Shown here piece after piece: positions 3,151 to 30,468 of a DNA stretch of 64,000 bases. The stretch is from NCBI GenBank assembly GCA_965649825.1, contig OZ287695.1, positions 1,477,288-1,541,287 on the forward strand. Reading direction: 5' to 3'. How positions within the stretch are numbered: position 1 is the first letter of the stretch; each line of letters begins with the position of its first letter. Source of the stretch: Penicillus capitatus. Lineage: Eukaryota; Plantae; Chlorophyta. The translations under genes were made by a program, and so were the position numbers. The notes below the pieces were generated by a model. That model was given only the letters and a program-made list of their open reading frames with translations. It was not told the origin of the DNA and ran no database searches.

Positions 3151-4194
3151 GCACTGAAGCTGGCGCAAGCGGCCAAATCTGAGTCTGCCTCGGTGATCAA
3201 CGTCCTTTCATTTTAAGGAACTGATCTATAGGTTAGCTTTTCTTTTACAATCTCCTATCTAAACAGTGCGACAGTCTACAGAGACAGAGACAAGATGAAA
3301 ACACCGTTTTCAGTTGTAGAGATTCGTTTAGCAAACATGTTTGGAGGAAGACCCGTTGTCAAAGCTCTCTGTTATCTTTCTACCTGTTTTGTTTTGCCTC
3401 ATACAATGAATTGTGACATCGGAGTTTTTAGTTTATGAAAGAGTGACATGGCGTACGAATCAACTGCTGTCAGAGACCGTGCGTAATCTTCCCTTTGTCG
3501 AATGCACTAGACGATTTTTAAGGAACTTCAGCCGCCAGCTCGTTTATCTCAGATGGTGATTGCCTCCACAGAATAGAATACAGTATGGCGCCGTCGCCTA
3601 CCTATCTTGTCGTACAGAGATAACGACGTGTTTTCGCGAGTGAGAGAGCGTTACACTGCCACTGTGATCGAGTTCAGTTCTGACTAAAGTGTTGTCGACG
3701 TTTGCAATGTATATGGTGTGATGTGTGTGGCGTCAACGTTTAATATGTCTGTGCCAGATTCGATACAAACAATCAGAAACACAGCGTCAGAATGGACAAG
3801 GTTTATCAACCTGATGAAGTACAGTTCACAACATTAGGAGCAACTTCGCAGTCTTAGAACATGCAAGAGGTGGCTGTCGTAAACTGTGCCAGCTGAAGGA
3901 ATGCTCGGACATCCAGACATCGATGAATAGGAACTCAATGCACACGACACCCGAATGCAGTTCTTAACTTCAGTCTGGATATGAATCTCGGCGTCAGCAG
4001 ATTTCGGCAGTCTGATAGACACCCACAAAGCATGTCAAGGGAGCAGTAATGGCTGCTGCATGGAGAAGCAAGATGAAAACTGATCAACGAAACCGGAATA
4101 CATCCCAGCCATTGAGTCAAAGGGGATAGATGGCATGATGACTCAGTGCAGTGAGCATCACCGATCCGTTATACATTGGTGGATTCAGAGATGC

Positions 4195-10066: not shown

Positions 10067-10844
10067 AGTGAGGGGCCAGTTTTTTTTGAGCTGTTTTCTG
10101 TTCGGGGGCTGAAAAATTTAAAAAAAATAAAAATTTTTATCTTCTCACATCTCACACTTTTTTTTGTGTGAGATGTTTAGAACAAAAAAAAATAAAAACG
10201 AAAGAAAAATTTTTATTCCAAGCATCTCACACTCTTCTGTGAGATTTAAAAAACAAAGAAAAAAACAAAAAGACTCAAGGGCTGTTTTCTGTTTCTATTG
10301 GGTTTTCAGCCATCTACCCTCGCTTTGTTGTACTTGGCTGTGTGTTAGTCGTTCTCACCCAGAGGCTGGTCGGAGGCTCATTTGCTCTTTGCTGCATGGA
10401 GGCTGTTATGGTTCTATCTGATGTTTTGCTGCATGGAGGCTGTGATCGTTTTATTCTCTGCTTTACTCTACTGAGGACTCTTTGTCTTACTTGCTATCTC
10501 GCTGCCTGGAGGCCGCCGTTGTTCAGTCTGCATGTCTTGCTGCAAGAAATCAATTCTCTCTGCCGAATGTTTCGTTCCAGTTGTGTTATCTGGTGTGAGA
10601 TAAGACCCAAGAGGGCGACAGCATGAAAATGCATGAAAGTTGAAGTGCTGTTTGTATCGGTCGAAGTCATGAAGAGAGTGAGTCGCTCTCAGCTCATTTT
10701 ACAGATCTCTAACTCCTCTGTCATTCTAGAACTGTCATTAGGATCGAACCAGTTTATTCGGAACTATAAGAGATCATCGAACGTTGTGTTGTGAGAGCTT
10801 TCTGGACCTCTTTCTTTGTTGCCAGCAAATGGAATACGGCAAAT

Positions 10845-13800
10845 CACACGTTAGATCGGATTCTGGAGCATTGGATGAGAGGTAATCTGGCTCTATGAGG
10901 AGGTGGAGTGAAGGTTGGACCGACATTTCGACTTATTGCGAGCAATGGAGATCATTCTCTTTACAGTTCACGTCTGCTGGCTACAAATCGTCGTGTAAAG
11001 AGCCAGTCATGCATAGGAATCGGCATGGCAGCAAAAGCAATCTTAACAGTAAGGTACAGTTCTATTATCCATTGCTAGCTGAACATCTACATTGGATGGC
11101 AGATCGTACGAAGACATCTGGATAGTCAATCTGCCTTGAAGAGGCTATTTCAGAAGAAGGGAGATAGCGAACCATCGACATCATTCGACAGAGTACAAGG
11201 TACCCGAGGAGACTGAACACGACGCTTGCAGCAGATGGAATCTGGCCATGAGACAGTTAGTTGGCTGGCAGGAGTGTCACAGAGAACTGTCGAACAGAGT
11301 GTGACGCACTTCCTGCATGACTGCACTAACAACACCCGTTAAGACTTCAATCTGAAGCGCCTTTGCTGATGTTTCTTCCAGTGCCGGACTTCAGTAACCA
11401 GTCACACTTTCCAGCCTGTTTCGACGAAGGAAGCCGCTGCTTTTGGGGATGACTGTCGACTGGGAAATCATCCCTGTGAAGAGGAAGCTGTCCGACCAAG
11501 AATGTCTCATCATCCGTTCTCCTGGTCCTCGGTGGAAATCAGCTGCAAAGTCTGCTCTGGACATTGACATTGGAGATGGTCCCGAAAAACGGAGGTTCAT
11601 GATCGAAGGGGCACTGGACAGTGACGACACGTAATCAATCATTCAGCATCCGACCTCTGGTGCAGTCCTTCGTCGTCTAGACTCTCCTGTAAGCTACACA
11701 GTGCTACTGTTTTGGCAAGATCGATCTTCATTGCTTTGAAGAAACGTAACTTGGAACAAAGGAGCAGCGATCATCTGCCTGAAGAAGCATCGAATTATCT
11801 CTCGGAGTTGGAAGGTTTCTCCGGAGAGGATTCTTCGTCGAAGATCATGTCCCATCCACTCCGTGAAGACAGGATCATCAACGGTGTTGGCTGCAGTGGA
11901 AATGGACATCCTTGACGTAAGTTCTCAATTCGATACCATTTAGCACTGTGAGCGCGTTGATGTCTCGATGGGCAGGACGAGGAAACGGTTCATGAAAGGC
12001 AATGCCCAATCCAAGCTTCGTTGATTCCGAGATCGGATCCTTGTCTCTTGGATGATCTCGTCGTTGGATGATGAAGCAGCCAATGGATGTCAACTGATCT
12101 ACGTGGACCGAGACGGGAACATAGAACAGATTGGATCCTGTTTTTGGCTTTGAACTACTCCAGCGATCAAAAGACCCCTGGCTGGGCACGGCAATGAAGA
12201 AGTGTATCGATTCCAGGCATGTCTACTTTCCCCTGTACCCTGATTGAACTTACATGTCACAGAATCAGCCAGTATTGAAGAAGAGGTGCTCGGTCTAATT
12301 CAATCTTACCAAGTGCGGAAATCCTTTGGAGAGAATAGGATGTCAGAGAGATGAATGCATTCGCTGCATATCTCAGCACAGGACAAGGATGATTCGGACA
12401 ACGAGAGCGGTCACCATACAGATGAAGGTATCCCATTCGTTTTCTCGATTGAGAAAAACGTGTGAAGTAGGCTGCGCTCATGCAAGAGACCAACAACCCA
12501 GTTTGTTTGCAGAAGGGAGTTGCACGGCAGGACATCGACTTTCTAAATCGTGGCAAACGTTGCGCAGCAATGCAGGGCTGCAACACCTCACCGATGGTCT
12601 CTATTTGGAGCTTAGTGGTAATTGACTGAGAATCTGAAGTTCACTAGTGGAAAACAAGATAAGAGGCGTCAAACTTTTCGAAGACAGCGAGAGTACAACT
12701 GAAAACATGAAGATTTGCGGACGAGTGAGAAGCTTTCCGTGACATTTTTCATTCACAGGCATCTCTGCAGGTGACCAACACGAACTTCCGGGCGGAGGGA
12801 ATCAATCGCCTTCCAGCAGACCCCGCGACTCGACTGGTATGGCCTGTCTGACCTGAGATCTCGAAGTATCCCAGATACGATGCTGTGGGTAGACCTCCTT
12901 CACGCAACCACGAGATCGATGGAACCATCCGCGGTGGAGTATCCACGCAGAAAAGGCAGAAGAAGATGATCTTCTATGCAAGCACGTTGTGCATGAGTGG
13001 TCAATGTCTCAGATGCCGTGGATTTTGTTTGAGCAACAGCCCTCGGTGAATGCTCAGTCGATCAGCGGTTCACAGCAACTTGCTATCGACAACTGCTTCC
13101 ATCGACGCATTCTGTCAGGGGCGATGAGAGGGTGGCTCGAGTGAGGTGAAAGCCGATTTTGATCTCGGCCATTCAAAGACAGAGCCCTCTATCGCAGAAC
13201 GGAGATTCCGAGTTCATCGACGATTTCTGTTTTGGCGTCAAGCAGCTCTTCCTTCGAGAAGGATTTAGCTCACTGACCGCATCGACGGTAGAAGCTGGAC
13301 TGTACATCGAAAGCTCAATGTCGAAGCAATACCAACAAACACGCTGTCATTCGTCCTCGAAGAACAGTTCATGCCGATGCAGATCCAGCATCTGGTTCTG
13401 GTTGACTGGATTCCAACTGCAGCAAGCAACCAGATGTGCCGTAAACGGAGTCTGTTCCACGAGAATAAGCACATGGAGAATCAACTCGAATCTCGGAGGA
13501 GATTGGCAGTCGAATCGCCCAGGTGAATTTCTGTGCTTGTTTACAACGGTGAGACATTCAAGGCTGGACATCAACCACGATGGGGTTTGAATCCTAGATG
13601 GCGGACGACATGCATGGTTTCGTCAAAGACTGCTGCTGCGCACACAGACAAGGCGTGGTCGACAGGAATCGACATCCGAAGCTGGAGAATTCTTGTGCCT
13701 GCAGAGTGTTCAAACTCTTTTCGCTGGCATGGCAGTTCTGCAACAGTCTACATTTTCCAACTGCTGAAGAAGCAAGCGACCTCTGTTGTTTTGTCCTGAT

Positions 13801-14500
13801 CTTAATTCAGGTATGTTCCTTTTCCGTGTTCACAGAATGAAACACTTGTGCTAGATTCAACAAGGTGCAAACGAGGAACTGTTGGCCGAAATGGACACGA
13901 GTCGACACGGCCTCGCAACTTCGACTCGTTGATATCACATGAAGCGAAGTGCTACTGGATGTTACCCAGAAGAACCTGTCCCAGAGGCCGAAGGACGTAA
14001 AATCAGGATGACAGACCACACCTGATCTTCAGAGAAAAGAGACGGGCAGGTGTGGCCTTGGAGGCAACAAATCCGGCAGGAGGAGCTTCAACTCAGATTC
14101 TGAAGCATGCTTGCAGACTGTCTTTCCAGCAATCCAGCTCTTGGAAACAGTCAACGCCGAGAGGCAGCTGCACTACTGACCAGAACACCCATTTACACAC
14201 ACGAGGCGTCAGCACTCTCCACGTCTTCGGAGGCGCATTGATCTACATGAATTGCCCTCTGGGATGCGCCACGATCTGAATGTTGAAGGTATGTCATTGC
14301 AGTGCACGAGTGGATGCCTGAAATCGACGTGGTCATCGTTGCAGATGAGTTCTGTGGATGGCAACCGAGAATCAAACGACCGAATGACTGCGAGGACAGT
14401 TTGGGAGAGTTGGCGAAGAAACATGCCGTTTCAAGATGCCACTGCTTCCTTGATGGTAACTCTGCAGACTTCATCCACGGCGGGACAGAAGGCTCCCAAC
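10845..14500 (+). pseudogene. Degenerate L1-type ORF2 (APE endonuclease - RT - CCHC)
   Basis: TLDRIL (10848) and GDH (10947) resemble APE RLDR..SDH. SQNQ..KKR, EKRVK*AALM..PVCLQKG, QGCNTSP (12573) and KIRGVKL..FADE (12714) resemble the L1 RT motifs with L1-like spacing. CPLGC (14253) and VWESWRRN (14399) resemble the L1 C-terminus. Many stops and frameshifts. Confidence 0.7.
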
Positions 14501-14934
14501 TCGCGAAGATTCATATCATCCCGAGTGTGTTCAGCAGAAGGGCTCGGATGCTGCACAGAAAGCGCAGAAAGAACAGAAAGAACCGACGTCAAGCAAAGAC
14601 ATCACGAAAGACATCAATCGACGCGGAAACCGAATCTCCGACCTGATGGACCAGATCACAGAATAACCAAGAGTTTCGACACTTCCGAGTCCATTGGAGA
14701 CCAGTCCATTGACTCGTTACGCAGACTGCTGGAGAAGCTTGACTAATCTGAAGAAGCACGGTGCCAGACCAATGCAGCAATGGAGAATCGTGTACCAAAT
14801 CCCAGCAGCAGCACAAAACACCACCCCCTGCAGCGGCGGCCGAAGACGTTTGGGAGGATGGTTGGGCGTCAGGGAGGAGAGAGCGTGGCCAGCGGCACTC
14901 GTCGAAGGAGTGCCGACAACTGTCGAGTGAATCG

Positions 14935-15461
14935 GTAAGTGAATCCCAGTCGTAGGTCTTCGGATCGGCATCCAGGGCCGTCTCTTCTGTCTCTTTTCCT
15001 TTCTCTTCCCTGGATACTCGTCTTATCGTTCTGGGCGGCGCGACTTCAATTGTTCTTCTGCGTGTTTATCTATTCACTTCCACTTCAAGCATCCTTTTTT
15101 CCGTTGTTTGCGTTTCTTGACAATCTTCTAGATGCAGCTGTCTCCTGTGTATTGTTCTCTTTTTGTATATTCTGTTTTCACCTTTTCATTTACTCCACGA
15201 CTGTAATGGATCTTTCTGTCTTTTTAAAACAATCATTCGTTGCGCCGCCCCCTATTGCATGTGTTTTCATACTCCTGTTCTTTTCTCTGTCCTACCTGCC
15301 TGTAAGTTTCCAGTTCCATGTGTGTTTCTTTTTTTTCCTGTGTGTCGTTCGTCCTCTTTCATTTGCTTTCCTTGCTGCTTCGTGTGTTTTTTCTTTTTTT
15401 CTGTTCCTGGTCCCTTTTGGACCCCTTTCCTTCATGTCCACGCAGCGCGCCGGATCCGAAG
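14935..15461 (+). other. Structured ~527-nt U-rich intron (unit 1, copy 1)
   Basis: GTAAGT donor and GATCCGAAG acceptor. Helices 14955-14969/15449-15464, 14970-14977/15008-15015, 15033-15044/15239-15250 and 15409-15413/15419-15423. Confidence 0.6.
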
Positions 15462-15858
15462 GCCGGTGCTGAGAGATTCGGCCGAATCACACTGGGAACT
15501 GTCTCCATTCCCAGCGGCTGCGTTTCGATACTGGTGCTGGCCACTGATGCTCAATCGGATGCGTCGTTGGCACCGTCAGTCGCAGGTAAACATTCGTCCA
15601 CCCTAGGAAACAGATCTCACTCTTTTGTCGCAGATGACGACGGGCTCATCCAGTTTCCGGCATTCGAGCCATTGAAAAAGATCTCTCTCCTTCACCGGCC
15701 GCCGCTTGGCAACATGGGGGACTCAGCGCACCTGGGCAGAGGAGGATATCACCGAGAAAGGGCAGGCATTGAGGAGGGGATGGGATGGGATGGAGAAGAC
15801 TCAGTGCTCCATTCCCAGCAGCACAACTGAAACAAAGAGTGACCAGATCGACTCCTGG

Positions 15859-16385
15859 GTAAGAGGCTTTCGGATCGATACCCAGAGCCGTCTTTTCTGT
15901 ACCTTTTTCTCTTCTCCTTTCTTTGGGTACCCGTTCTCTCTCGTCTGGGCGACAGAGTCTGTGTTCTTCTGCTCTTTTTTTTTCTTTTCTTGTTGATTGT
16001 CGCAGATTCTGTCGCCCCTTTCCTGCACGTGTTTGTTTCGCTCACTTTGTGTTTGTCTTTCATTTTTCATTATTTAATTTGTTTGTTCTGTACTGTGTTT
16101 ACATTTCACTGATCTTGTGTTTTTCCTATTTTGTTTTCTAACTCGTTCTCGTCGCTCAGTTTTCCTATTGTCTCGTTCTTGTTTGTTCTCATTCTGTCTG
16201 GAGCTGTATCACGTGCAGCTTCCTTACTGTCATCCCACCCTCTCCTTTCTTGATATCGTCTTTTTTTCTTTTAAATGTATGCGTGTATGTATTGCTTTTT
16301 ATTCTCTTGTGGTTTTTTCTGTTTTGAGTCCCTTTTTTGATCGGGACTCCTTAATGCATGTCCGCGAAGCGCGCCGGATCCGAAG
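15859..16385 (+). other. Structured ~527-nt U-rich intron (unit 2, copy 1)
   Basis: GTAAGA donor and GATCCGAAG acceptor. Helices 15863-15876/16377-16388, 15879-15887/15921-15929, 15947-15961/16003-16017 and 16326-16332/16343-16349. Confidence 0.6.
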
Positions 16386-17239
16386 CTCTCCGACTGGTTC
16401 ACTCACCCTGGAGACCTGCTGCTTTATCGACTAACTGCCTCTGCCTCGCCAGATTCTCTGCCCAGGTTGCACGAAAGAATCCGTCCGCTGCAAGTGTGCA
16501 ACTACTACTTTCATGGTCCAAATCTCATTCTTTGATGTGACAGCTGAGGAGTCGCAGTGCACAGATCAGTAACAGGAAGGAAGCAGAGACGGATTTAAAG
16601 ACATCTCTGGTCACGGTTTATTTCGTTCTTTCATTTTGACTTTTTGACATTCATCTGTCGTCAATTGACATCAGCTGCTTCTTTTGTGTTACCATTGTCT
16701 CTTTGGCTTTCTGGTTGATATGTGGAATTAACCACTGCAAAATGAAAACAATGATCTCCCGTTTTTGCGAGCTGTCGAACCTTTTGTTATTCTTCACGGA
16801 CTGACAGAAAAGAAGTAGAAAAGGTCGTTGAAATTAACAAAAGTATCTACCATTAGACGATGCAGTGGTCAGTCTCATAATATGTTGTGCTTGTCCCCCC
16901 ATTTTCCTCCGCAGTGAAAGCACGAGGGTGTCTGCGTGGATAGGATGTGTCATCCTGTTGTTAGGCATAGTCAGTGAGTGACGATTGTACTGCGCCAACA
17001 AAGATTAAAGTTGTGTGGAGACATGTAATCGGCATTCTTCGTTTATGCAGATGTCCGCTACCCAAAGAAGACTGGCGGAATTCGAAGTAAAGGCAGAACT
17101 CAAGAAACCCAGATTCGACATTACCGAAATGTTTGTCCCCATTCTGTTCAGTATCGAGTTTTTTTTTCCGCGTCAGATCCAACATTGAACAAGTTCACGA
17201 GGATGAGTGAGACACAGTCTGGTAACACCATAGGACATG

Positions 17240-18260
17240 CTACTTGGCACTTGCCGATCTTCGCTGCTGCGACCTATCATCCAACTGTCATGGAGGGATG
17301 CGAGATGAAATGCTCGCTATGTTTTCCGTATTTAGAATTTGTGGACATTCTTTTAGACGCCAGCTGCTCGTCCAACACGCTGAGGTGCTTCTTGTGGCGT
17401 GCGATCACGGGCTGCACTGCCGAACGACATCGCTGGAGATGAAGAAGCCGCGAAACGGTTTGTGTGTACTCGCCTCCGGAGTAGGTGACTCTGGGTAGTT
17501 TTTACACTCCACATGGGTCTCGCTGGAGTGCTCTACTAGTTACCCCGTTAGCAGAGAGGCTGAAAGTCGCCCTCTATTCCGAGTTGGCCTATAACCCTGT
17601 AACGAAAGAACGGTCTTGCCGCCGACGTAACCGTTGTTCCCTTATCGTGCATCTTCGAAGGAGAGTGTCACTGGACTGTTACGATATTGGAACTCGTCGA
17701 TGTTGCATCTCGCAAACTTGATGGCTTCTCTTCTTTGGCAACCATCAGTGAAGATGTGTCTGCTAGAAGTCAATAACGCACCTTCCTATACCATTGTTGC
17801 AGATGGACCTCTCTCGAGGTAGAAGACAGTTGGCCATCTCATTCAATGAAGTTAATCATCATTGCACACGACGCGTGACATCAACTGCCCGGAGGCAGCG
17901 GTACTCCATTCTCCTGAGGATTGGCATCACGGGAGCAGTGACGAGGTTTCCTAGTCTGAGTGCTTCGTGTGAGTTACAGCAGTTCCGTGTCACATCATCG
18001 TTGAGATTATCTATCGATCTGGTTTGCGAATGCAACAGCATCAATCTCTTGTGAACAAGATTACACTAAAGCAGCGTGGTCGCTTCGAGATTGAATGCAG
18101 ACTCCATAACAGTTCCAAGACAACAGTCATTCTATCCGAGACAGCCTCGATGTCAGACGATCCCAGAATTCGGCAAACCATCTATCTTCCCAAGCTGTTC
18201 AGCTGCAGACCCCCTTCAGCTGCTTAGTATGAAAAATCTACTTGTGGCAGCAATACAAGT
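17240..18260 (+). pseudogene. Possible degenerate LRR-type gene fragments
   Basis: LADLRCCDLSSNCHGG and PLQLLSMKNLLVAAI weakly resemble LxxLxLxxNxLxG repeats. Frames are broken. Confidence 0.25.
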
Positions 18261-19086
18261 TCGTGTATGTTTATGCATCACGGTACGAAGTACCACATTC
18301 GTTGCGAATCTACAAGATAGGAAAACCTGATTCAGATCGTATTCTGAACTGTCTGTAACCAGCATATATTATGAATGACCATCCTTGCTATGAACGAATA
18401 TGCAGCAGTCTCTCCGTGGACATAGTGTACACCTCTAAACGCGAACGCATCACGTGGCCTCCTCCATTAACTATCCCTGCACCTCTGTTGCGCCATGCGC
18501 TTTCATACCCTTGCATTCTTCATGACGAGATTCTGTGACTACCCTGGTCCCTGAGCGCCTAAAGCTCACACTTGTCACACAGATTATCAACTCTGACAGA
18601 ACAGACATGCGTTTTGCCAGAACAGCCCGTTTGTGGTGGAAACAAACTATTCGTGCAGGGTACACTTGTGTCGCTGAGATCTCGGCGCATTCGCGCCTCT
18701 TTTCAGACAGCTGAACACGTCCAGACATTGCTTGCGCCTCTGTTTTCTGCGTCAGAAAAGGAGACTCTTTGGCCGTCTTCTGTAAAGACAGTGACCAATC
18801 TCAATCGAAACTGCAAAGTTGCGTAGAAAAAAGTAAAAGAAGCACACTCTTCTTTCTGCCCGACCCACAGAACCGATTCTTGCCACTCTATCCATCACTC
18901 CGACGCTAAAGATCCTCCTGTTGACGTTCTCTTCTGGCGGTATGGCGTCTGTCGGCGCGATCTCGTTGTCACGGCTGTCGCAGCCGCAACCGGAATGTCA
19001 TCTACGGGTCGCCATCGGCAACTGCTAAACGACTTTCTTCTGCGCAGGCGTTCGTCCTCAGCTCTCTCCGACGCTCCACTTTGACG

Positions 19087-19930
19087 ATGGCTACGATGTC
19101 AATGGATGAGGCCTTTGCCCAGGCCATGAACATCTATGAGTAGGTTCTGCTTTCTTCGATACGCGTCGCTCTTCTTCGGCGGTGTGGCACTTCTGTCGGT
19201 TATTCCGGACTTCCATGACGTTGCAGCGACCTCTGTATTGTCGTTATCTTCCATGTCGCTGAACGCAGGGCGTTTCGGTTTTTTCGCTTATTCTGCAACA
19301 TTTGCTATATCCTCCCTCCTCTTTTGGCGGGAAATCTGACCGGTCTTGTGTTCTGTAGTTTGGAGAGATTGACACTCTCCAAAGTGTTGAGCTGCCTCGC
19401 CCCTGAGCCCTTTTGCAGCATGCCATTAGAGGCTCGCGAGAGTCTCTTTTGGCGGGTTAAAGTCGAGACGACCCGTGTCCAGGCGCAAGAAGTGATCCGG
19501 CAGCGCTTCCCTCCGGGAACGCAACGCCGAGGAGCGCGTGTGTTGACACGCGAAGAACGCGCTGAGCGATTGGGCTCGCACATAGACGCCGAGCAGACAA
19601 CAGCAAGATCCCGTTAACCTTGCTTTCTTACATCCAGTATTCCTTTTTACAGATACCTTCGCATCCGCCGCCACAACCCTGCCAACCTCAGTCCCAGCCG
19701 ACGCCGATGAGCTGTCCGTCGGAGGAGATGGACTGGGAAGCAGATCCCGGTCCATCTCCTCCGGCGGACGGGACATGGGGTTCCAATGGGACCGATGTCC
19801 TCATGTACTGTCAGACAATCCGCTATGTAAGTTCCTGTATTTTTTATTGACCTAATATTTTCGTCGCTAGTTTGTCGGTTGGGACATACCGCCGCCCATG
19901 GGTGCTCCGACATCCTGCCTGTTTTACTGA
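19087..19930 (+). CDS. Intact spliced ORF1-position protein, copy 2 (exons 19087-19139, 19359-19602, 19653-19826, 19871-19930)
   Basis: Intron phases 2, 0, 0 as in copy 1, with a GC-AG second intron. Open frame: MATMSMDEAFAQAMNIYD|LERLTLSKVL..RESLFWRVK..GARVLTREERAERL. Confidence 0.7.
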
Positions 19931-20073
19931 CTTTTTAATGTCAGTAGATAAAAATTAAAAGAATAAATATTCTCATAATTCTCACATATCACACTTCTGG
20001 AAAAGTGTAATAAAACAAAAAAATGAATAATCACGCTGGAAAAAAAGCAAAAAAGCACAAAAATTTCTTTCTC

Positions 20074-20163
20074 ACTGTCAGCGGGGGCTTTCTGTTTTCG
20101 TTTCTTTGCTGTTTTCGTGTTTTGACTGTCAGCGGGGGCTTTCTGTTTTCATTTCTTTGCTGT
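20074..20163. repeat. 39-bp direct repeat, 51-bp period
   Basis: ACTGTCAGCGGGGGCTTTCTGTTTTCRTTTCTTTGCTGT at 20074 and 20125. Confidence 0.9.
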
Positions 20164-20599
20164 CTTTGTATTTTGGCGCGGTCAGTCATAAGTTGGTGTT
20201 TGTTTTCATGCATGCAGACTTTCGGATCTTAGACTTTTCAGAATGGAAGAGTTCGATTACGATTATGCCTGTCCATACGAGGAAGTTGGCTGTTTTTTTT
20301 TTCTATTGAATGTGGCAATGGATGCGGACGTAAGTGATGTGGCCGATTCTGGACTAGTTCGATTTGCTGTGAAGCGGTAGATGTTTGATAGATGACCTTT
20401 TGTGGCATTTGTTTCTGACATGTTTGGTTTGCTGGGAAAGAGACGGATGCTTGATGGATGAGTAGCATGATGCAGTTATCGCAGAGTGTTCGGTTTTCTT
20501 GTGGTAGTAGATACTAAGGTGTCTGCTTCCTTTGGAAGAGGTGTCTGGCTGTCGCGATGGACTGTTTTTCTGGAGTAGATAATAGTGAGGTCTCATGCA

Positions 20600-23500
20600 G
20601 AGGTAGATCACATGTCGAATCGGATTCTGGAGCATTGGATGAGAGGCAATCTGGATCCGCGAGGAGGTGGAGTGAGCGTTGAATGGACATTTCGACTTAT
20701 TGCGAGCAACGGAGATCGTTCTCTTTACAGTTCACGTCTGCTGGCTACAAACAGTCATGAGAAGGACCAGTCATGCATAGGAATCGGCATGGCAGCAAAA
20801 GCAATCCTCACAGTAAGGTACAGTTCTGTTTTCCATTGCTAGCTGAACATCTACATTGGACGGCAGATCGTACGAAGACATCTGATAGTCAATCTGCCTT
20901 GAAGAGGCTATTTCAGAAGAAGGGAGATCAGCAAACCATCGACATCGTTCGACAGAGTACAAGGTACCCGAAGATCCTGTCCCATCCACTCTGTGAAGAC
21001 AAGATCATCAACAGTGTTGGCTGCAGTGAAAATGGACATCCTTGACGTAAGTTCTCAATTCAATGGCCGCAGCACTATGAGCGCATTTCGATAGGGGAGC
21101 ACAGAGAAAGGTCAAGAAAGTCAATGCCCAAGCCATGGTCCGTCGAGGTCCGAGATCTGATTTTCGTCCCATAGATGATTCCACTGTCAGCTAATGGTGC
21201 AGCCAACGGATGTTAACCGACCGAAGTACGTGGATCAAGATGCGGCTTAGACAGATTGGAAAATGTCTTGCCTTCAGTCTGCGATCATTCCGGAGATGCC
21301 AAACCATCGGAGGCTCTACAGTAGGCGATTCGAAGAAGTCAGGAAGCAAACATTGACAGCAAGACCAAGAAAACGAAAGACTTCAATCATGAAGTGAAAT
21401 TGAACTCTTCAGCGTCGTCCAGTTTAGTCATTTCCAGACAACTCCAGCGATCAAGAGACCCTGCTGGACACGGCAACGAAGATGTGAATCGATTCCAGGT
21501 CTGTCCACTCTCTGCTGAACACTTGATGGACGTACATGCCACAGAATCGACCGGTGTTGGAGAAGAGATGTTCGTCTGATTCGTTCTTGCCGAGTTGCGG
21601 AAATCCTTTGGACAGAATGAGACTTCAGGGACATGAATGCATTCGCTGCATACCTCAGTGCAGGACAAGGATGATTCGGATAGCGACGGTGGTCACGCAT
21701 GCAGATGAAGGTGTCTCATTCGTTTTTTTCGGTTGAGAAACAGGTGTGAAATAGGCTGAGCTCATGCAAGAGAAAACCAATCCTGTTTGTTTGCAGAAGG
21801 GAGTTGCACGGCAGGAAAACGAGTTGCCAAATCGTGGCAACGTGCTACAGCAAGACGAAGGTTGCAACACCTCATCGCTGGGTCTCTATTCGGAGCTTGA
21901 AGGCAATGGACGGAGAACTGAATCTCTAAAGTCCGCTATAGGAAAACAAGATAAGAGGCGTCACAGTTTTCGGAGACTGTGAGAGAACAACTGAAAACCT
22001 GAAGATCTGAGGACGGGTGAGGGCTTTACATGTCATTTCTCGCACAAAGGCGTCTCTGCAGGTGATCAGAAAGATCTATCAAACATCACGGCACAGTGAA
22101 TCGCCTTCCAGCGGACTCCATAACTCGATTCGTCTGGCTTAACATCTCGAAGTCTCCCAGACACGATGCAGTGGACAGACCTCCTCCGCCCGACCACGAG
22201 ACCAGCGGAACCATCCTCGGTGGAGTATCCAATCAGAAAAGGAAGAAGACGATGATCCTCTATGCAAGCACGTTGTGCATGAGTGGTCAATGTCTCAGAT
22301 GCTGATGGTTTTGTCTAGGCAACAACCCTCGGTGAGTGCTCAGTCGATCAGCTATTCACAGTGGTTTGCTATCGACAACTGCTTCCATCGACGCATTCTG
22401 TCAGAGGCGATGGGAGAATGGCTTGAGTGAGATGAGAGCCGATTTCAATCTCGATCGTTCGAAGACAGAGTCAGTCCTCCATCACAGAACGAAGATTCCG
22501 AGTGCATCGACACTTTCTATCTGGCGCCAATCAGTCCTTCTTTAAAGAAGGGTTTCACTCGCTGGCGACATTGACGGTAGAAGCCGGACCAGCTGGACTG
22601 TATGTCGAAAGCTCAATGACGAGATAATTCCAACAAACACGTTGTGACTCGTCCTCGAAGACCAGTTCGCATTGATGCAGATCAAACGACCAGGTTCTGG
22701 TTGACTGGATTTCCGCTGCGACAAGGAACCAGCTGTGCCGCAAACGGAGTCTGTTCCACGAGAATAAGCGTCTGGAGAATCCATTCGAATCTCAGAGAAA
22801 GAGTTTGGCAGTCGAATCACCCAGGTGAATTCTTGTGATTGTTTACAACGGTGAGAAATCCAAGGCTGGCCGCCAATCACTATGGAGTTTGAATCCTAGA
22901 TGGCGGACGATATGCATGGTTTCGTCAAAGACTGCTGCTGCGCACACAGACAACGGCGTGGTCGACAGGAATCAGCATCCGAAGCTGGAGAATTCTTGTG
23001 CCTGCAGAGTGTTCAAACTCTTTTCGCTAGCATGGCAGTTCTGCAACAGTCTACATTTTCCAACTGCTGAAGAAGCAATCGACCTCTGTTGTTTTGTCCT
23101 GATCTTAATTCAGGTATGTTCCTTCTCTGTGTTCACAGAATGAAACACTTGTGCTAGATTCAACAAGGTGCAAACGAGGAACTGTTGGCTGAAATGGACA
23201 CGAGTCGACACGGCCTCGCAACTTCGACTCGTTGATATCACATGAAGCGCAGTGCTACTGGATGTTACCCAGAAGAACCTGTCCTAGAGGCCGAAGGAAG
23301 TAAAATCGGGATGACGGACCACACCTGATCTTCAGAGAAAAGAGACGGACAGCTCCTTGGAGACAACAAAGTACGCAGCGGAGTCTCAAACTAAACTCTG
23401 AAGCACGTTTGCAGACTGTCTTTCCAGCAATCCAGCTCTTGGAAAGAGTCAACCCGACTCGAAACTGCATGCACTACTGACCAGAACAGCCATCGTGACA

Positions 23501-23800
23501 CGAGGCGTCAGCACTCTCCACGTCTTCAGAGGCGCATTGATCTACATGAATTGCCCTCTGGGATGCGCCACGATCTGAATGTTGAAGGTATGTCATTGCA
23601 GTGCACGAGTGGATGCCTGAAATCGACGTGGTCATCGTTGCAGATGAGTTCTGTGGATGGAAGCCGAGAATCAAACGACTGAAAGACTGCGAGGACAGTT
23701 TGGGAGAGTTGGCGAAGAAACATGTCTTCCAAGATGCCACTGCTTCCGGGATGGTAACTCTGCAGACTTCATCCACGGCGGGACAGAAGGCTCCTGACAC
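20600..23800 (+). pseudogene. Degenerate L1-type ORF2, copy 2
   Basis: Homologous to 10845-14500 (NRILEHW..GDRSL, PQNRPVLEKR, EGCNTS, KIRGVT, CPLGC, VWESWRRN), with multiple stops. Confidence 0.65.
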
Positions 23801-24231
23801 GCGAAGATTCACATCATCTTCGAGTGTGGCCAGCAGAAGGGCTCGGATGCTGCACAGAAAGCGCGGAAAGAGCCGACGGCAAGAAAAGACGTCACGGAAG
23901 ACATCAGTGACATGAACATCGAATGTCCAACCCCGGTGGACCAGATCACAGCAGACACACCAGGAGTTTCGACACTTCCGAGTCCATTGCAGATCAGTCC
24001 ATTGACTCGTTACGCAGACTGCTGGAGAAGCAGGACAGATCTGAAGAAGCACGGTGCAAGACCAATGAAGCAATGGAGTATCGTGTACCAAATCCCAGCA
24101 GCAGCAGCACAAAACACCAGCCCCCTGCAGCGGCGGCCGAAGACGTTTGGGAGGATGGTTGGGCGTCAGGGAGGAGAGAGCGTGGCCAGCGGCACTCGTC
24201 AAAGGAGTGCCGACAACTGTCGAGTGAATCA

Positions 24232-24736
24232 GTAAGTGAATCCCAGTCGGAGGTCTTCGGATCGGCATCCAGGGCCGTCTCTTCTGTCTCTGTTTCCTTC
24301 CTCTTCCCTGGATGCCCGTCTTATCGTTCTGGGCGGCGCGAATTCAATTGTTCTTCTGTGGTTTTCCCCTTTTCACTTCTGCTTCATGTATCCTCTTTGC
24401 GTTGTTTGTGAACATCTTTAGATGCAACTGTTTCCTGTGATTTTCTCTTTTTGCCCTTTTCCTTGATCCACTACTGTATGGTGGTTCTTTTCTGTTTTTT
24501 AGTTTATCATCCGTTGCGCCGCCCCCTATTGCATGTGTTTTCATACTCCTGTTCCTTTCTCTGTCCTACCTGCCTGTAAGTTTTCAGTTCCATGTTTGCT
24601 TGATTTTTTTCTGCGGGTCGTTCGTTTTCTTTTATTTGCCTTCCTTGCTGCTGCTTCCTATGTTTCTTTTTTTGTTTGTCCTTTGTCCCTTTTTGGACCA
24701 TTTCCTTCATGTCCACGCAGCGCGCCGGATCCGGAG
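24232..24736 (+). other. Structured U-rich intron (unit 1, copy 2; 505 nt)
   Basis: GTAAGT..GATCCGGAG. Helices 24252-24266/24724-24739, 24265-24274/24306-24315, 24331-24341/24514-24524 and 24685-24688/24695-24698. Confidence 0.55.
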
Positions 24737-25144
24737 GCCGACGCTGAGACGATTCGACCGAATCGCACTGGGAACAGTCTCCATTCCCAGCGGCTGCGTT
24801 TCGATACTGGTGCTGGCCACTGATGCTCAATCGGATGCATCGTGTGGCACCGTCAGTCACAGGTAAAAACATCCATTCTGCCCTACAAAACAGATCTCAC
24901 TTTTTTGCCTCAGATGACGACGGGCTCATCCAGTTGCCGGCATTTGATGCCATGGCATAGGATATCTCTCCTTCACCGGCCGCCGCTTGGCAACATGGGG
25001 GACTCAGCGCACCTGGGCAGAGGAGGATATCACCGAGAAAGGGCAGGCATTGAGGAGGGGAGGGGAGGGGATGGGATGGAGAAGACTCAGTGCTCCATTC
25101 CCAGCAGCACAACTGAAACAAAGAGTGACCAGATCGACTCCTGA

Positions 25145-25694
25145 GCAAGAGGCTTTCGGATCGGTACCCAGAGCCGTCTTTTCTGTACCATTTTCTCTTC
25201 TCCTTTCTCTGGGTGCCCGTTCTCTCTCGTCTGGGCGACAGAGTCTGTCTGTTTTCCTGCTCCGTTTCTTTTTCTTTCTTATTGATTGTCGCAGATTCTG
25301 TCGTCCTCTTCCTGCATGTGTTTCTCTCGCTCACTTTGTGTTTGTTTCCATTTTTCGTGTTTTAATTGGTTTCATTTCGTGCTGTGTTTACACCTTTGTT
25401 GTCTTGTGGTTTTCCTGTCTAGTTAGCTAACGCGTTGTTATTGCTCGGTTCCCTTTTTGTTTTTTGTTTGTTCTCTTTCTGTCCATCTTGAGCTGTTTTA
25501 CGTGCTACTTACTACCTGCTGATTCTTGTCGCACATTTTTTATCTTCACTTCCTTTTTTGATATCGTCTTGTTTTCTTTTCTAATGCATGCTTGTATGTT
25601 TTACTTTCTATTTTCATGTGCTTTCTTCTGTTCCTAGTCCCTTTTTTGATCGGGACTCCTAAGTGCATGTCCGCGAGGCGCGCCGGATCCGAAG
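25145..25694 (+). other. Structured U-rich intron (unit 2, copy 2; 550 nt, GC donor)
   Basis: GCAAGA..GATCCGAAG. Helices 25149-25162/25686-25697, 25163-25173/25207-25217, 25233-25247/25292-25306 and 25636-25641/25652-25657. Confidence 0.55.
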
Positions 25695-26689
25695 CTCTCT
25701 GACTGGTCTACTCACCCTGGAGACCTGCTGCTGTATCACTAACTGCCTCACCAGATTCTCTGCCCAGGTTGCATGAATCAATCCGTTTGCTGCAAGTGAG
25801 TGACTACCGCTTTTGAGGTCCAAACTCATTCTTTGATGTGACAGTCGAGGAGTCAGTGCGCACGAATATCAGATGCACAGAAGCCAATAAGCGAGGAGTT
25901 TGAAGCCATCAGTAGTTGGATGAGATTACCTGCTGTCGTCGGGGTTTCTTGACATTCACATGTTACAATATACAGCCGATTGCTGACGTTCATGATGGTC
26001 TTTTGGATACCTTTGTGATTTCTGGAGAAGCACCCACAGAACCAGAAAAAGCATCTCGAGCTTCTGCCAGCCATTGCCGGTCTTTCATTCTTCTCTGGAG
26101 ACGCAATCAGAATCGAAGATGTCACTGAGACCAGCCAGTCCTCTCTGCTGTTCAACGACCAACTAGTTCTCCGTCACATATGATGCTATTTACCCTTGTC
26201 CGCTTCATTCTCTTTAACACTTTGACAGTGCCTGTCCATGTGGATATTGTTTGCGATACTGTCATCAAACATACATGTGCACTTTTCTAGACGAGTGGGT
26301 GATTGCACAAGTCGTCGAAGCATGGGGGCATGCAGACTAATGCAGTTGGCATTCCTCGCTCGCTGCAAATCTGATGAGTTGTTAATTATTTCATCGTGAC
26401 ATTGGTCAGACATATCTGCATTCCAGATGTGGTTCTTGTAAAACAAGCTCCCTTACATAACCGAACTTAAAACACGCGTCTCACACAGATGCAAAGATGG
26501 TTGTATTTGGCATGTCCTGCGATAATAGAGGATGATCAGCCTCCCCGTCTGAAGAAGAATGAAATAGAAAGGTCCATGGTCATAACGTTCTTCACTTTGC
26601 ACAACAAAAGAATGCCGTCGACGCCCACATTTCGGCGCTTCTTAGACGTCAGTATGTGATGATGTATTCATCTCCATTCCATTCTTCAA

Positions 26690-27677
26690 ATGGGTTTATT
26701 CGAGAGCAAGGAAGCCAACACGAGTCGAGAGATTCAACACTTTCAGAAAATACCCGACAGATTCAATACGATCGAAGAAGTTCAAAAAGCTCTTCGTCAG
26801 GCTGGTCTCGAAGCCTGTCAGCTCATTGTTGGAATCGACTTCACGAAGTCAAACACATGGACGGGCGAGATATCCTTCAATGGTAACCTTCTTTCTATTT
26901 TCTATTGACGATCCTGACTCTGTCGTCTTTTCAGGACAAAACCTGCACTCTATTCACGGGCCACCCAATCCATACCTCAACGCCGTCTCGTTAATTGCCC
27001 GGACATTGGAAGACTTCGATGACGATCACTTGATTCCCTGTTATGGATTTGGAGATATGACGACCACTGCGTCGTCTGTCTTCTCCTTCTATCCAGGCAA
27101 CCAACCTGCCAATGGCCTCCAAGCACTCGTTCATCGATACCGAGAATTGGTTCCCTATGTGTCATTGTCTGGACCCACGTCATTCGCCCCACTGATTCGT
27201 CAAGCAATGCGTCATGTCTATCACACTGGAATGGACTTTCATCTTTTGTTGATTCTGGCAGACGGGCAGATTTCCTCCTCGTGTATGGAAGAGACGATGC
27301 GTGCGATTGAAGATGCATCTATGTTTCCGATCTCTATCGTTGTCATCGGTGTTGGAGATGGTCCCTGGAAGACAATGCGTCACTTTGATGACTCTCTGCC
27401 AAGTCGACGGTGGGACAACTTTCAATTCGTGGAGTTCAACAGAATTCTGAATGCGACATCGTCCGTCACGGAGGAACGAAGAGAGGCAAGCTTTGCATTG
27501 AATGCTTTGATGGAACTGCCAGATCAGTACAAAATCGCAGAGCATCTGATTGGCATGGCGGCGCAGGAGAGAGTGAAAGACATCGTCGCTTCTATTCCTC
27601 CTTCAATACTTAAGGATCCGCCCGTGCATTTTAGCGAGTGGCGCGAACTGCCCACTGCGCCGCCTATGCCTCTGTGA
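26690..27677 (+). CDS. Copine/vWA-domain protein (RGLG-like, no RING); intron 26883-26934
   Basis: LIVGIDFTKSNTWTG, NPY, DDDHLIPCYGFGD, SGPTSFAPLI, LLILADGQ, VGVGDGPW, WDNFQFV and ALMELPDQY; MG..S N-terminus. Confidence 0.9.
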
Positions 27678-28263
27678 TCTTCCGGTATTGTCGTTTGCCT
27701 CTATGTCAAGATTCGATGTTTGATTCGTTTATTCACGACATCATTACGGATGTTATAGCTGTTGTGCGGGAACAGGCAGTAGACGTTGATAGGATATCCT
27801 TTGCGTCTTTTCCATTCGTCATTCTAATAACTTAGAGGATTGAGAAAAACGTGCGAGAAGATTCAATCCTCAAGCATCAAGGGAGCATGTTGTTCCTGTT
27901 CTTTCCGTGTGTCTGTCTCTGAGAGTCGAAACATCGCATCCATTCAAGCAAACGAAATGCATTATCGTATGTTTAAACAATTGTTTCCGATCCGGCAAAA
28001 AATGTGGCTCACAGATCATTGATGCAGATTGTCTGAGAGCATTCTGCCGTCGATCACCAGTCACTGCGTTTATTGTTAGAGTAAGCGACGACGACGTTCA
28101 AACCCTAGATAAGCACTTCAGGGCGCATATTTATACGTTGCACCCCACCTGGGCAGAACTCCAGCAGTAGGAGGAAAGTCGACACCAACGAACAGATGAC
28201 AGATCGTTTGTAATCGAACATTTAGTCAGTTATCTTGGATCATTTCTTCATGGACTGCAAGAA

Positions 28264-28452
28264 ATGACAACCAGGAAGGCCAAGAAGGTTATCTCGCCGG
28301 ACGCCTGTGCCAGGAGATTGCGCATGGATCCGATGGTTTTGCGAGTTCTCGACATTAGAGACGGAGAAGACGAGTCCCAAACGAAGGACATACTTTCGTT
28401 CGTGACTAGTCTTTGCCAGACAGCACGGGACGCGCCCCGTCGTCATTCATGA
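28264..28452 (+). CDS. Possible small or partial hypothetical protein
   Basis: 62-aa ATG ORF in an otherwise gene-dense context; no recognised motif. Confidence 0.25.
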   Translation: MTTRKAKKVISPDACARRLRMDPMVLRVLDIRDGEDESQTKDILSFVTSLCQTARDAPRRHS

Positions 28453-28528
28453 ACGTCCCAAAGGAAGACGAGCGATGCGTTCTGATTAAACTTTCATTTG
28501 ACCTTTTGACTTTTTCGCCGTTCTCGTG

Positions 28529-29737: not shown

Positions 29738-29739
29738 TC

Positions 29740-30468
29740 ATGCCACGTCATCGAAATCGGCGACAACGACGCGATGTCGGGCCGGGGGCTACGAGCGAAG
29801 GACACTTGGAAGAGCATCCGGAAGGGGAGCGGGTGGGTCGAGGCGTGCGTCTGGCTCTGTGGGATTTGGGTCAATGCGACCGTAAGAAATGCACAGGAAT
29901 GCGGCTCGTTCGGCAAAACCGAGTAGAATTGCTGCGTCTGGGTGTGCGCTTTCCTGGAGTTGTCTTAACGCCTTCTGCCACGAAATGCGTCTCGCGCGAA
30001 GACGCAGAGCTCGTACGGCAGAAGGGCGTCGCGGTGGTCGACTGCTCATGGAATCGTTTGGATCAAGTGCCTTTCCATCAGACAAAAGGCGCAGCTGAGC
30101 GTCTCTTGCCCTGGCTCCTCGCTGCCAATCCCATCAACCATGGTCGCCCCTGTACCCTCTCTTGTGCCGAGGCCTTAGCCGCGATGCTCATCATCTGCGG
30201 ATTTCGAGCACAGGGAGAAGAAATCCTCTCTCAGTTTAAATGGGGACCTTCTTTTCTCACACTCAATGCAGAAAACCTAGCCATGTACGAGTCATGTGCC
30301 ACTGGGAGAGATGTCATCGAGGCGCAGGAGCAGTGGCTGAAACATATTGAACAGGAGGCTAGAGACGGAACCTACGATACACCACACTATGAATTCCCGC
30401 CGTCCTCATCTGACGAGGATTGTTTTGAAAGAGAGGATTACAGAGATGTCCCGTTTTCGTGTAACTAA
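29740..30468 (+). CDS. TSR3: 18S rRNA aminocarboxypropyltransferase
   Basis: WDLGQCDRKKCTG, VVDCSW, RLLPWLLAANPINHGRPCTLSCAEA and FKWG, plus an acidic tail. Confidence 0.95.
   Translation: MPRHRNRRQRRDVGPGATSEGHLEEHPEGERVGRGVRLALWDLGQCDRKKCTGMRLVRQNRVELLRLGVRFPGVVLTPSATKCVSREDAELVRQKGVAVVDCSWNRLDQVPFHQTKGAAERLLPWLLAANPINHGRPCTLSCAEALAAMLIICGFRAQGEEILSQFKWGPSFLTLNAENLAMYESCATGRDVIEAQEQWLKHIEQEARDGTYDTPHYEFPPSSSDEDCFEREDYRDVPFSCN

Follow-up and report, generated by a model that had tools for sequence, protein, structure and literature searches.

Two U-rich units that open on a GTAAG donor sequence and are predicted to fold into several helices lie close together in the 3' part of a repeated DNA segment. 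They raise the question of whether they belong to a new family of structured RNAs, as a preliminary description of the locus proposed, or are inserts of a kind already known. Our analysis of the window (the whole 64,000-nt stretch of DNA) and of related loci did not demonstrate a new structured RNA family; the features match those of known introner-like elements. The inverted-repeat ends and compensated hairpins place the units nearer to the introner-like structured introns of fungi and algae than to a new RNA class. As the best explanation we propose, tentatively, that they may be long, structure-compacted spliceosomal introns of introner-like or MITE-like origin that were duplicated in tandem, a reading that we place somewhat short of probable.

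Units, inverted-repeat arms and copies

The units, the segment that carries them and their paralogues in the window are located as follows.

10843-16563, + strand: host segment copy 1, ~5.7 kb, with the units in its 3' part and no recognisable protein domain
14935-15461, + strand: unit A (A1), U-rich candidate intron, 527 nt
15462-15858, + strand: spacer from A to B (the "middle exon" of the preliminary description), 397 nt, including a typical 48-nt GT-AG intron at 15586-15633
15859-16385, + strand: unit B (B1), U-rich candidate intron, 527 nt
20448-26416, + strand: host segment copy 2
24232-24736, + strand: unit A2, paralogue of A in host segment copy 2, 505 nt
25145-25694, + strand: unit B2, paralogue of B, 550 nt

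Much of the preliminary outline of the units was confirmed. Both are indeed U-rich (44-47% T, 12% A), GTAAG is present at 14935 and 15859, and GATCCGAAG terminates at 15461 and 16385. The homology of A and B at both ends is also sound (BLAST E ~1e-7 for each end; nhmmer E 1e-18 to 1e-30), with BLAST matches pairing 14959-15037 with 15869-15951 and 15395-15461 with 16313-16385, and it is limited to the arm-to-arm span. The common length of 527 nt, in contrast, is true of A1 and B1 only and is a coincidence, the other six copies measuring 505, 534, 537, 550, 555 and 556 nt. In unit B2 the donor GT has become GC, and the TGG just before it TGA.

Eight distinct unit copies were found: the window holds four, and two further loci of the same metagenome assembly, ENA ERZ25074695, supplied the rest. 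A related assembly, ERZ26696514, is ~88% identical to it in the syntenic stretch. Both units are present in all five host-segment copies (window copies 1 and 2, L001, L003 and L004), with no empty sites among them. Profiles of both unit ends searched with nhmmer yielded no copy beyond the host segment in the window and L001-L005 (~150 kb), and exact-motif scans gave 0 matches in JGI metagenomes (both unit ends), GTDB genomes and IMG/VR. At L005, the satellite and flank region is present and carries no unit. Comparison of the surroundings of A and B for a tandem duplication that included the flanks gave weak collinear matches (z ~3 and ~2), and the near flanks were not significant.

Within the two units of host segment copy 1, the following elements were distinguished.

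14934-14969, + strand: unit A left inverted-repeat arm GGTAAGTGAATCCCAGTCGTAGGTCTTCGGATCGGC, containing the proposed donor GTAAG (14935) and the P1 5' arm (14955-14966)
14967-15018, + strand: unit A hairpin P2 (GGCATCCAGGG / CCCTGGATACT), its pyrimidine loop conserved between A and B
15033-15250, + strand: unit A stem P3 (GGGCGGCGCGAC / GTTGCGCCGCCC) around a variable 194-nt loop
15256-15266, + strand: unit A conserved motif TGCATGTGTTT, directly 3' of P3
15409-15423, + strand: unit A small hairpin P4 (GGTCC CTTTT GGACC), without covariation and broken in A2
15433-15464, + strand: unit A 3' block CATGTCCACGCAGCGCGCCGGATCCGAAGGCC, with two candidate acceptor AGs and the P1 3' arm (15453-15464)
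15837-15876, + strand: unit B left arm, with an outer remnant GAGTGACCAGATCG, an extra ~12 nt that hold the donor GTAAG (15859), and the P1 5' arm GAGGCTTTCGGATC (15863-15876)
15877-15931, + strand: unit B hairpin P2 (GATACCCAGAG / CTTTGGGTACC)
15947-16017, + strand: unit B stem P3 (GGGCGACAGAGTCTG / CAGATTCTGTCGCCC) around a 41-nt loop
16024-16034, + strand: unit B conserved motif TGCACGTGTTT
16326-16349, + strand: unit B hairpin P4 (GAGTCCC / GGGACTC), mismatched in B2, B3 and B4
16357-16407, + strand: unit B 3' block and right inverted-repeat arm, holding CATGTCCGCG; the arm itself, GCCGGATCCGAAGCTCTCCGACTGGTTCACTCACC, is 16373-16407

The arms follow the pattern GGTRAGTGAA..CCAGTCGGAG..CTTCGGATC. 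The left arm of A and the reverse complement of the right arm of B agree at 31 of 37 positions, with a score of 36 where shuffles gave 13.7 +/- 2.3. An inverted repeat within A pairs 14955-14969 with 15449-15464 at 15 of 16 positions, and across the spacer the right arm of A could pair with the left arm of B at 11 of 12 positions. The GGTAAGT that starts the left arm of A is mirrored in the right arm of B as GGTGAGT, and both are consensus 5' splice sites. Because the arms continue past both proposed splice sites (by 22 nt beyond the previously proposed intron end in the right arm of B), so that P1 forms the core of a longer, TIR-like inverted repeat, a DNA MITE with TIRs stands as a rival to the intron reading. 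The GAATC on either side of unit A (14929-14933 and 15484-15488) could be a 5-bp target-site duplication and is also half of the palindrome GATTCGGCCGAATC; the flanks of unit B hold no exact repeat, the best pair being CTGAA and CTGGA.

The proposed donor precedes the repeat core by 23 nt in A and by 9 nt in B, and the two donors occupy non-homologous positions. Each 3' block offers two AGs: in A, the first after the pyrimidine tract is at 15444-15445 and the acceptor proposed earlier at 15460-15461; in B, they are at 16368-16369 and 16384-16385. The acceptor proposed earlier sits within the P1 helix, and 16 nt of the 3' block (CGCGCCGGATCCGAAG) are identical between A and B. With GTRAG at the left end and AGs at the right, an introner-like intron is a reasonable reading of these ends.

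P2 and P3 carry compensatory changes

All four helices of the preliminary description, P1-P4, appear in both the minimum free energy and the centroid folds, and P1-P3 were recovered independently by RNAalifold. The two motifs reported with them, TGCAYGTGTTT and CATGTCCRCG, occur in every copy. Across the eight distinct copies, 96.9% of the 288 P1-P3 pair cells are standard pairs, a proportion that falls to 35-56% in controls with the partners offset by 1-3 columns. This pairing is kept while A and B differ at 21 of 72 stem positions (29%), about as in the adjoining unpaired columns (45 of 130). The covariation score of 0.270 was reached by none of 500 shuffles (0.184 +/- 0.014), and the offset controls scored far below it.

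The claim that the stems persist while both of their arms change stands for P2 and P3, with six or seven double changes, and falls for P1 and P4, with none. P2 and P3 account for three double changes each, and a seventh, in P3, is masked by an alignment gap; those in P2 are dispersed over 3 of 11 positions, and those in P3 are clustered. All are confined to the single A-B branch, which makes the covariation one A-versus-B contrast. No P1 pair changed on both sides; the unit B version needs a C·C mismatch or two bulges, and the helix decays independently in A and B. P4 retains a common GTCC/GGAC core in A and B and is disrupted in A2, B3 and B4. Single copies carry disruptive changes in P4 and in parts of P2 and P3. 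Identity among copies is 90-98% at the unit ends and 54-84% in the interiors, lowest in the P3 loop and at least 92% in the region of the conserved motif 3' of P3; along the copies it forms a mosaic that fits gene conversion.

The non-Watson-Crick pairs had been described as G·T throughout and taken as a sign of an RNA fold on the + strand. Neither part of that argument survives. Besides 11 G·U events, A·C occurs three times and U·C and C·C once each, and the excess of G·T fits a mutation bias of the + strand, where the substitution rate per base is 0.150 for C>T and 0.049 for G>A (approximately threefold). Since this bias by itself predicts approximately two-thirds G·U (binomial p ~0.24), the excess is not significant as an argument for an RNA fold. 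Folding z-scores on the + and - strands are -1.8 and -3.4 for A1 and -4.9 and -4.5 for B1, and thus prefer neither strand.

Rfam offered no closer identification. The window has no match at the gathering score, and when 14800-16500 was scanned at E <= 5 the lone match was a lncRNA fragment of no relevance. Group I and group II self-splicing introns were considered and rejected: no Rfam intron or ribozyme match appears at E <= 5, there is no domain V-like hairpin, and the 5' end is GUAAG.

A non-coding host with very short introns

The host segment exists as a few copies of ~6 kb in repeat-rich, transposon-rich, segmentally duplicated surroundings. Its introns are canonical GT-AG introns of 48-51 nt on the same (+) strand as the units. 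Native introns measure 48, 49, 50 and 52 nt, and the three isocitrate dehydrogenase (IDH) introns are verified by the uninterrupted 349-aa reading frame that their removal leaves. The + strand excess of C>T is the pattern expected of a non-template strand, and together with the ~50-nt GT-AG introns on that strand it suggests that the + strand of the host segment is probably transcribed.

Coding capacity, by contrast, is not seen in the host segment. Its substitutions lack codon periodicity (113, 117 and 118 mismatches by codon position, with no significant sliding window), and Pfam domains number zero in the three sense frames and in the called ORFs. Removal of the units had been said to restore a consensus reading frame; in the four copies examined (window copies 1 and 2, L003 and L004) and their consensus, no ORF crosses both junctions with either acceptor. 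A match to a 2967-aa protein at 28% identity, the only one of the spacer outside the locus, is weak and repeat-driven and aligns through a translated intron, and was dismissed as spurious; otherwise an exhaustive representative protein search matched only the locus's own ORFs. Two further large protein searches, with concatenated ORFs of the region and with the conceptual spliced product, gave no match, but they also missed a database ORF (P0121) that shares 36 identical residues with the queries, so that their blanks do not indicate absence.

These observations bear directly on the earlier proposal of a retrotransposed element, in which the units would be introns in a retrotransposon 3' module, with a structure that prevents splicing and leaves unspliced RNA to be copied. 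In its favour, the host segment occurs in several copies, and a 206-bp piece of its start reappears after its end in L003 and L004. However, no Pfam domain turned up in the segment, and neither did a reverse transcriptase, integrase or protease; the RVT_1/rve frame of L004 is carried by a young LTR element of its own (identical 157-bp LTRs) that inserted into the segment. On the basis of this independent insertion the retroelement hypothesis was rejected. Several sense-strand introns are kept that retrotransposition of spliced RNA would delete, and the copies are few, in segmentally duplicated surroundings. The 3'-module reading is thus largely refuted, and we regard it as scarcely credible.

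Introns, transposon relics or functional RNA

If the units are structure-compacted introns, the host would be a transcript unit that was spliced on the sense strand, is now non-coding, and bears the units as inserts. The spliceosome would remove them from a donor G|GTRAG in the outer end of the left arm to an acceptor AG within, or just ahead of, the right arm. Folding of P1, P2 and P3 would take up most of the 500 nt and draw the splice sites together, in a setting where native introns are just 48-52 nt; a fold that approximates the splice sites would explain why pairing in P2 and P3 has been kept by matching changes despite sequence drift. A and B would descend from one ancestral unit, for which a local tandem duplication seems likelier than two insertions of one element. 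In long yeast introns, complementary segments shorten the effective distance between 5' splice site and branch point, and the stems here are likewise proposed to loop out excess length where short introns are the norm. The yeast stems, however, are single and gene-specific, whereas these lie in a repeated unit that has inverted repeats at its ends.

Several observations favour this intron reading: homology that extends from arm to arm only, with 96.9% pairing at 29% stem divergence; GGTAAGT and GGTGAGT at the arm ends, with a 3' pyrimidine tract followed by AG; and canonical 48-51-nt introns on the same strand, with the threefold C>T bias. As the flanks show no coding constraint and no frame crosses the junctions, there may be nothing left for splicing to preserve. 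Against the intron reading are the non-homologous donors and the two AGs 16 nt apart that compete as acceptor, arms that run past both splice sites, folding without preference for the + strand, and the lack of extra copies in ~150 kb or in the public collections scanned. Covariation drawn from one A-versus-B contrast, with P3 changes clustered as in a single template switch, also weighs against it.

Alternatively, the units may be unspliced relics of a non-autonomous DNA transposon (MITE), with arms that were TIRs once bound by a transposase and with GTAAG and AG incidental; we consider this unlikely, though deserving of serious weight. Their hairpins would then be DNA palindromes that arose by replication template switching, which can mimic compensatory stem changes without selection (PMC8794818), or that were once needed in single-stranded DNA during transposition. 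The changed P2 pairs are nevertheless scattered (3 of 11) and not clustered, and the hairpin loops are conserved together with two single-stranded motifs. A MITE would account for the long inverted repeat (31 of 37 between A left and B right, 16 bp inside A), for its extension beyond the proposed intron borders and for a P1 that lacks covariation and decays separately in A and B, but the pronounced skew of T over A along the entire unit on one strand is unlike a symmetric foldback, and P2 and P3 lie in the 5' half only, unmirrored at the other end. The GAATC around unit A is a possible duplication, yet it is a half-palindrome, and unit B has no clear target-site duplication. The size of ~0.5 kb, the lack of coding content and a region full of repeats and transposons are in keeping with a MITE, as are the equal folding of both strands and the G·T excess accounted for by mutation bias. 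Against it, no copy was found outside the host segment in the sampled sequence.

A functional RNA fold, be it a regulatory structure or an intronic RNA that stays stable after excision, is quite improbable in our estimation. In such a fold the four complementary arms could compete, with skipping or circularisation of the 397-nt spacer or masking of the 3' splice site as the outcome; the complementarity of A-right to B-left over the spacer (11 of 12 positions) and the position of the previously proposed acceptor AG within P1 are consistent with this. Covarying stems occur together with conserved loops and motifs, but the covariation is a single evolutionary contrast, and P4 and parts of P2 and P3 are disrupted in single copies. 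Five old, family-wide wobble-type pairs are all G·U on the + strand with no A·C, although the measured mutation bias leaves the wobble excess without significance. The ends are 90-98% identical and the interiors 54-84%, a mosaic that also fits gene conversion; moreover, Rfam returned no match and the host resembles decaying non-coding DNA. That the stems and loops are selected elements of a new type of self-compacting long intron, whose competing arms govern removal, spacer skipping and back-splicing of the spacer into a circle, in a eukaryote with a spliceosome otherwise confined to introns of ~50 nt, or that they belong to a stable excised non-coding RNA, seems to us very doubtful.

Under the preferred intron reading, the closest parallels are fungal introner-like elements (ILEs), which, as summarised in PMC3609843, exceed regular introns in length, fold stably, show compensatory mutations and can also be present as low-copy duplicates inside one gene. 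According to that summary of van der Burgt et al. (2012), the features shared with our units include a length exceeding that of regular introns (here 505-556 versus 48-52 nt), GT...AG ends with a pyrimidine tract, a stable predicted structure with compensatory changes, duplicates within the same gene and degeneration over time. The fungal elements as described there differ in that near-identical copies, numbering tens to hundreds, occupy unrelated genes and their splicing is verified, whereas here two diverged putative introns lie in one repeated non-coding host, in another lineage with ~50-nt introns.

Introners of Micromonas, Aureococcus, dinoflagellates and others are MITE-like, intron-creating DNA transposons with terminal inverted repeats and no coding capacity, as here (PMC11282704, PMC9860276). 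In introners, too, an element end carries a splice site, for which G|GTRAGT at the outer end of the left arm is the candidate here; they have short target-site duplications beside the repeats and many copies, whereas our units show a doubtful GAATC (A only) and no further copies were found. Covarying internal hairpins such as P2 and P3 are absent from the introner features listed in PMC11282704. The internally symmetrical sister (stw)introns of Hypoxylaceae have terminal inverted repeats of 45-55 nt and no target-site duplication, and share with our units end-pairing repeats, a lack of flanking duplications and kinship to canonical introns; they are nearly fully symmetrical, short, placed at many new gene positions and experimentally spliced (PMC8469720). 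Our units, in contrast, are symmetrical at the ends alone, with an asymmetric, T-rich body and no proliferation seen. Euglenid intermediate introns combine end pairing with conventional borders, and euglenid intermediate and nonconventional introns resemble our units in that RNA structure joins the ends and a MITE-like origin has been proposed; their ends pair over just a few nucleotides, at fixed offsets, and non-canonical borders are frequent, compared with arms of 16-37 nt and GT...AG here (PMC4770533, PMC3935182).

The locus carries a caution, since inverted-repeat ends, a biased excess of G·T and forced reading frames let a transposon-like insert mimic a new structured RNA. The case is a small one, comprising two diverged units in few copies of a decaying non-coding repeat, with published precedent for every feature. 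Should the units prove to be spliced, they would exemplify introner-like introns that bear inverted repeats, in a lineage whose native introns are extremely short, and it is in a lineage with introns of ~50 nt that the need for folding to present distant splice sites should be strongest. If this is true, the link among transposon-like ends, intron gain and structure-assisted splicing would become testable in a new organism.

Paired stems in units A and B

The sequence agrees with the coordinates and motifs assigned in the preliminary description to the two intron-like inserts, unit A (14935-15461) and unit B (15859-16385). Their proposed homology holds at the ends (~80 nt at the 5' and ~70 nt at the 3' side, 75-77% identity), while the interiors do not align and the common length of 527 nt is coincidental, the remaining copies measuring 505-556 nt. 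The unit-closing helix P1 and the internal stems P2, P3 and P4 all appear in the + strand minimum-free-energy and centroid folds, and RNAalifold independently recovered P1-P3 once the conserved modules had been aligned. Standard pairs fill 96.9% of the 288 cells in this alignment, shifting the 3' partners by 1-3 columns lowers this to 35-56%, and the covariation score is 0.270 versus 0.184 +/- 0.014 for shuffles.

Conservation of pairing with change on both arms, initially claimed for all four stems, applies to P2 and P3 only: six pairs differ in both partners when A is compared with B, three in each stem, and a seventh in P3 (C-G vs U-A) is masked by an alignment gap. No P1 pair changed on both sides, and in unit B the helix forms only with a C·C mismatch or a pair of bulges; in P4, A and B share one GTCC/GGAC core, disrupted in three of the other unit copies (A2, B3 and B4). 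Since stem sites differ between A and B at 21/72 positions and adjacent unpaired columns at 45/130, the stems drifted in sequence yet stayed paired. This drift under maintained pairing is real and well beyond chance, and the structure of the units is real. That they represent a new structured intron or ncRNA family is not established; Rfam returned no match to the units.

Folding showed no preference for the + strand (z scores of -1.8 on the + strand vs -3.4 on the - strand for A1, and -4.9 vs -4.5 for B1, the units of host copy 1), the strand on which an RNA fold was originally proposed. Nor are the non-Watson-Crick pairs all G·T: we counted ~11 independent G·U events and 3 of A·C, with one C·C and one U·C. 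Polarised singleton substitutions in the units, per base on the + strand, comprise C>T at 0.150 vs G>A at 0.049, with T>C similar to A>G. Because this bias by itself predicts about two thirds G·U, 11/14 is unremarkable (binomial p ~0.24 for the excess, by our estimate). The old, family-wide wobble-type pairs are G·U in 5/5 cases, which is suggestive, although not significant. The roughly threefold excess of C>T over G>A across all copies of A and B fits transcription with the + strand as sense.

Inverted-repeat arms and candidate splice sites

P1 is a portion of a longer inverted repeat, so the arms overrun the proposed intron borders. The left arm of unit A is:

14934-14969, + strand, unit A left arm, GGTAAGTGAATCCCAGTCGTAGGTCTTCGGATCGGC

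Against the reverse complement of the B right arm (16373-16407), it agrees at 31/37 positions (score 36; shuffles 13.7 +/- 2.3), and the B right arm extends 22 nt past 16385. The internal inverted repeat of A1 is 16 bp, with an imperfect version over 46 alignment columns in A3; the B left arm is interrupted by ~12 additional nt bearing its GTAAG. The outer arm end reads GGTAAGT and its mirror in the B right arm GGTGAGT, both consensus 5' splice sites. An 8-nt palindrome, CGGATCCG, lies within the right arm of each unit, and a perfect 14-nt palindrome, GATTCGGCCGAATC, directly 3' of unit A (15474-15487). A 5-bp direct repeat, GAATC, surrounds unit A (14929-14933 and 15484-15488) as a candidate target-site duplication, which is not established because GAATC is half of the 14-nt palindrome and unit B lacks a clean equivalent.

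The first AG past the pyrimidine tract (15445 in A, 16369 in B) lies 16 nt upstream of the acceptor first proposed, whose AG falls within the predicted P1 helix. Each unit therefore has two candidate acceptors, and the choice between them is beyond sequence alone. A further consensus 5' splice site, GTAAGT, occurs inside unit A (15305-15310) and at the equivalent position in A2-A4, within one of the best-conserved internal stretches, CCTGCCTGTAAGTTT; B lacks an equivalent, and the long unit might conceivably be removed in steps. In B2, the donor GT is changed to GC (25145-25146) and the preceding codon from TGG to TGA, with the identical change in the allele on L001, a 99.4% identical ENA record.

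Native introns are uniform and very short, at 48-52 nt (window coordinates):

26883-26934, native intron
28769-28817, native intron
29058-29105, native intron
29434-29483, native intron

With three candidate introns (49, 48 and 50 nt) taken out, the isocitrate dehydrogenase (IDH) gene reads as an uninterrupted 349-aa frame, and the copine gene intron is 52 nt; by this measure the units are ~10x normal intron length. The native introns carry a branch-like yT[GC]AC 11-23 nt ahead of the 3' AG, and their 5' splice sites vary beyond GT. Typical short + strand introns also occur at 15586-15633 and about 16494-16543 in the host segment, the ~6-kb repeat holding both units.

The host segment and its copies

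The host segment is present twice in the window (10843-16563 and 20448-26416) and once in L001, which is contig ctg339690 of ENA metagenome assembly ERZ25074695 and aligns with window 20607-37677. The window and L001 differ structurally by ~10 kb at 10400-20600, and the difference in copy number reflects either strain or haplotype variation or a collapsed assembly. This contig also matches the copine/RGLG-like ORF (26826-27677) at 100% identity, and relatives of the ORF at 83-68% identity lie on other ENA contigs. Two further host copies in ERZ25074695, on a 792-kb contig (L003) and a 36-kb contig (L004), were reached by way of called ORFs that share protein clusters at 90% identity. Both units are present in every host copy, with eight distinct sequences (A1-A4, B1-B4); those of L001 (A2'/B2') equal A2/B2 in all segments compared. 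The host copies show mosaic identity, the outlier changing from one copy to another along the sequence, a pattern that fits gene conversion, and the unit ends always rank among the best-conserved parts. Profiles of both unit ends found no additional copy in the window or L001-L005, and no exact match to unit motifs turned up in JGI metagenomes, GTDB genomes or IMG/VR.

Window 1-3167 is occupied by satellite arrays of high GC content (64-68%), whose periods are about 50, 88, 94 and 119 nt. Related arrays recur in L003 and in a further locus, L005, which makes this a repeat-rich, possibly subtelomeric region. In a related species (L002, a 1.67-Mb contig of ERZ26696514), identity is about 88% across 9.5 kb on the downstream side of the copine gene; on the upstream side, 2-oxoglutarate dehydrogenase and a kinase take the place of the host segment, and synteny thus ends exactly where the repeats begin to differ from it.

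Removal of the units had been said to restore a reading frame, which does not hold. Across window copies 1 and 2, L003, L004 and their majority consensus, no open frame spans both junctions with either candidate acceptor. Each host copy has a private frameshift or stop, copies 1 and 2 mismatch about equally often at each codon position (113/117/118), periodicity is absent from all sliding windows, and indels between them are numerous. Pfam detected no domain in the host-segment sense frames or in any called ORF, and an exhaustive protein search matched only the locus's own ORFs, plus one weak hit judged spurious. A retroelement reading is likewise without support, since the reverse transcriptase/integrase ORF of L004 is part of an independent LTR retrotransposon inserted in the host. 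The 157-bp LTRs of this young Ty3/gypsy-type element (L004 2498-7341) show 100% identity, and its two ORFs are 526 aa and 985 aa long (RVT_1, Integrase_H2C2, rve). The element lies in host copy 4 at a site corresponding to window 22961-22965, with an apparent 5-bp overlap, and looks recently active.

Origin and likely nature of the units

Forward-sense homology between the A and B flanks is weak (z ~3 and ~2) and not significant in the near flanks; tandem duplication of one ancestral unit is slightly favoured over two insertions. Most likely, the units represent a low-copy introner-like element, a T-rich insert between inverted repeats. The main rival explanation is an unspliced MITE relic, with template switching as the process that shaped its palindromes (PMC8794818). 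A stand-alone RNA with a function of its own, or a switch between competing helices, is possible but unsupported.

All main features of the units already have precedents. Introners are MITE-like (PMC11282704), and introner-like elements of fungi exceed regular introns in length, form stable structures with compensatory mutations and are known also as low-copy duplicates within one gene (PMC3609843). Hypoxylaceae sister introns have terminal inverted repeats of 45-55 nt without flanking duplications (PMC8469720), and the ends of euglenid intermediate introns pair (PMC4770533). In an introner-like element of this kind, the left arm would supply the 5' splice site, with the AGs at the right arm, and the units would be removed as long spliceosomal introns; P1-P3 may then fold away the surplus length, the organism being geared to introns of 50 nt.
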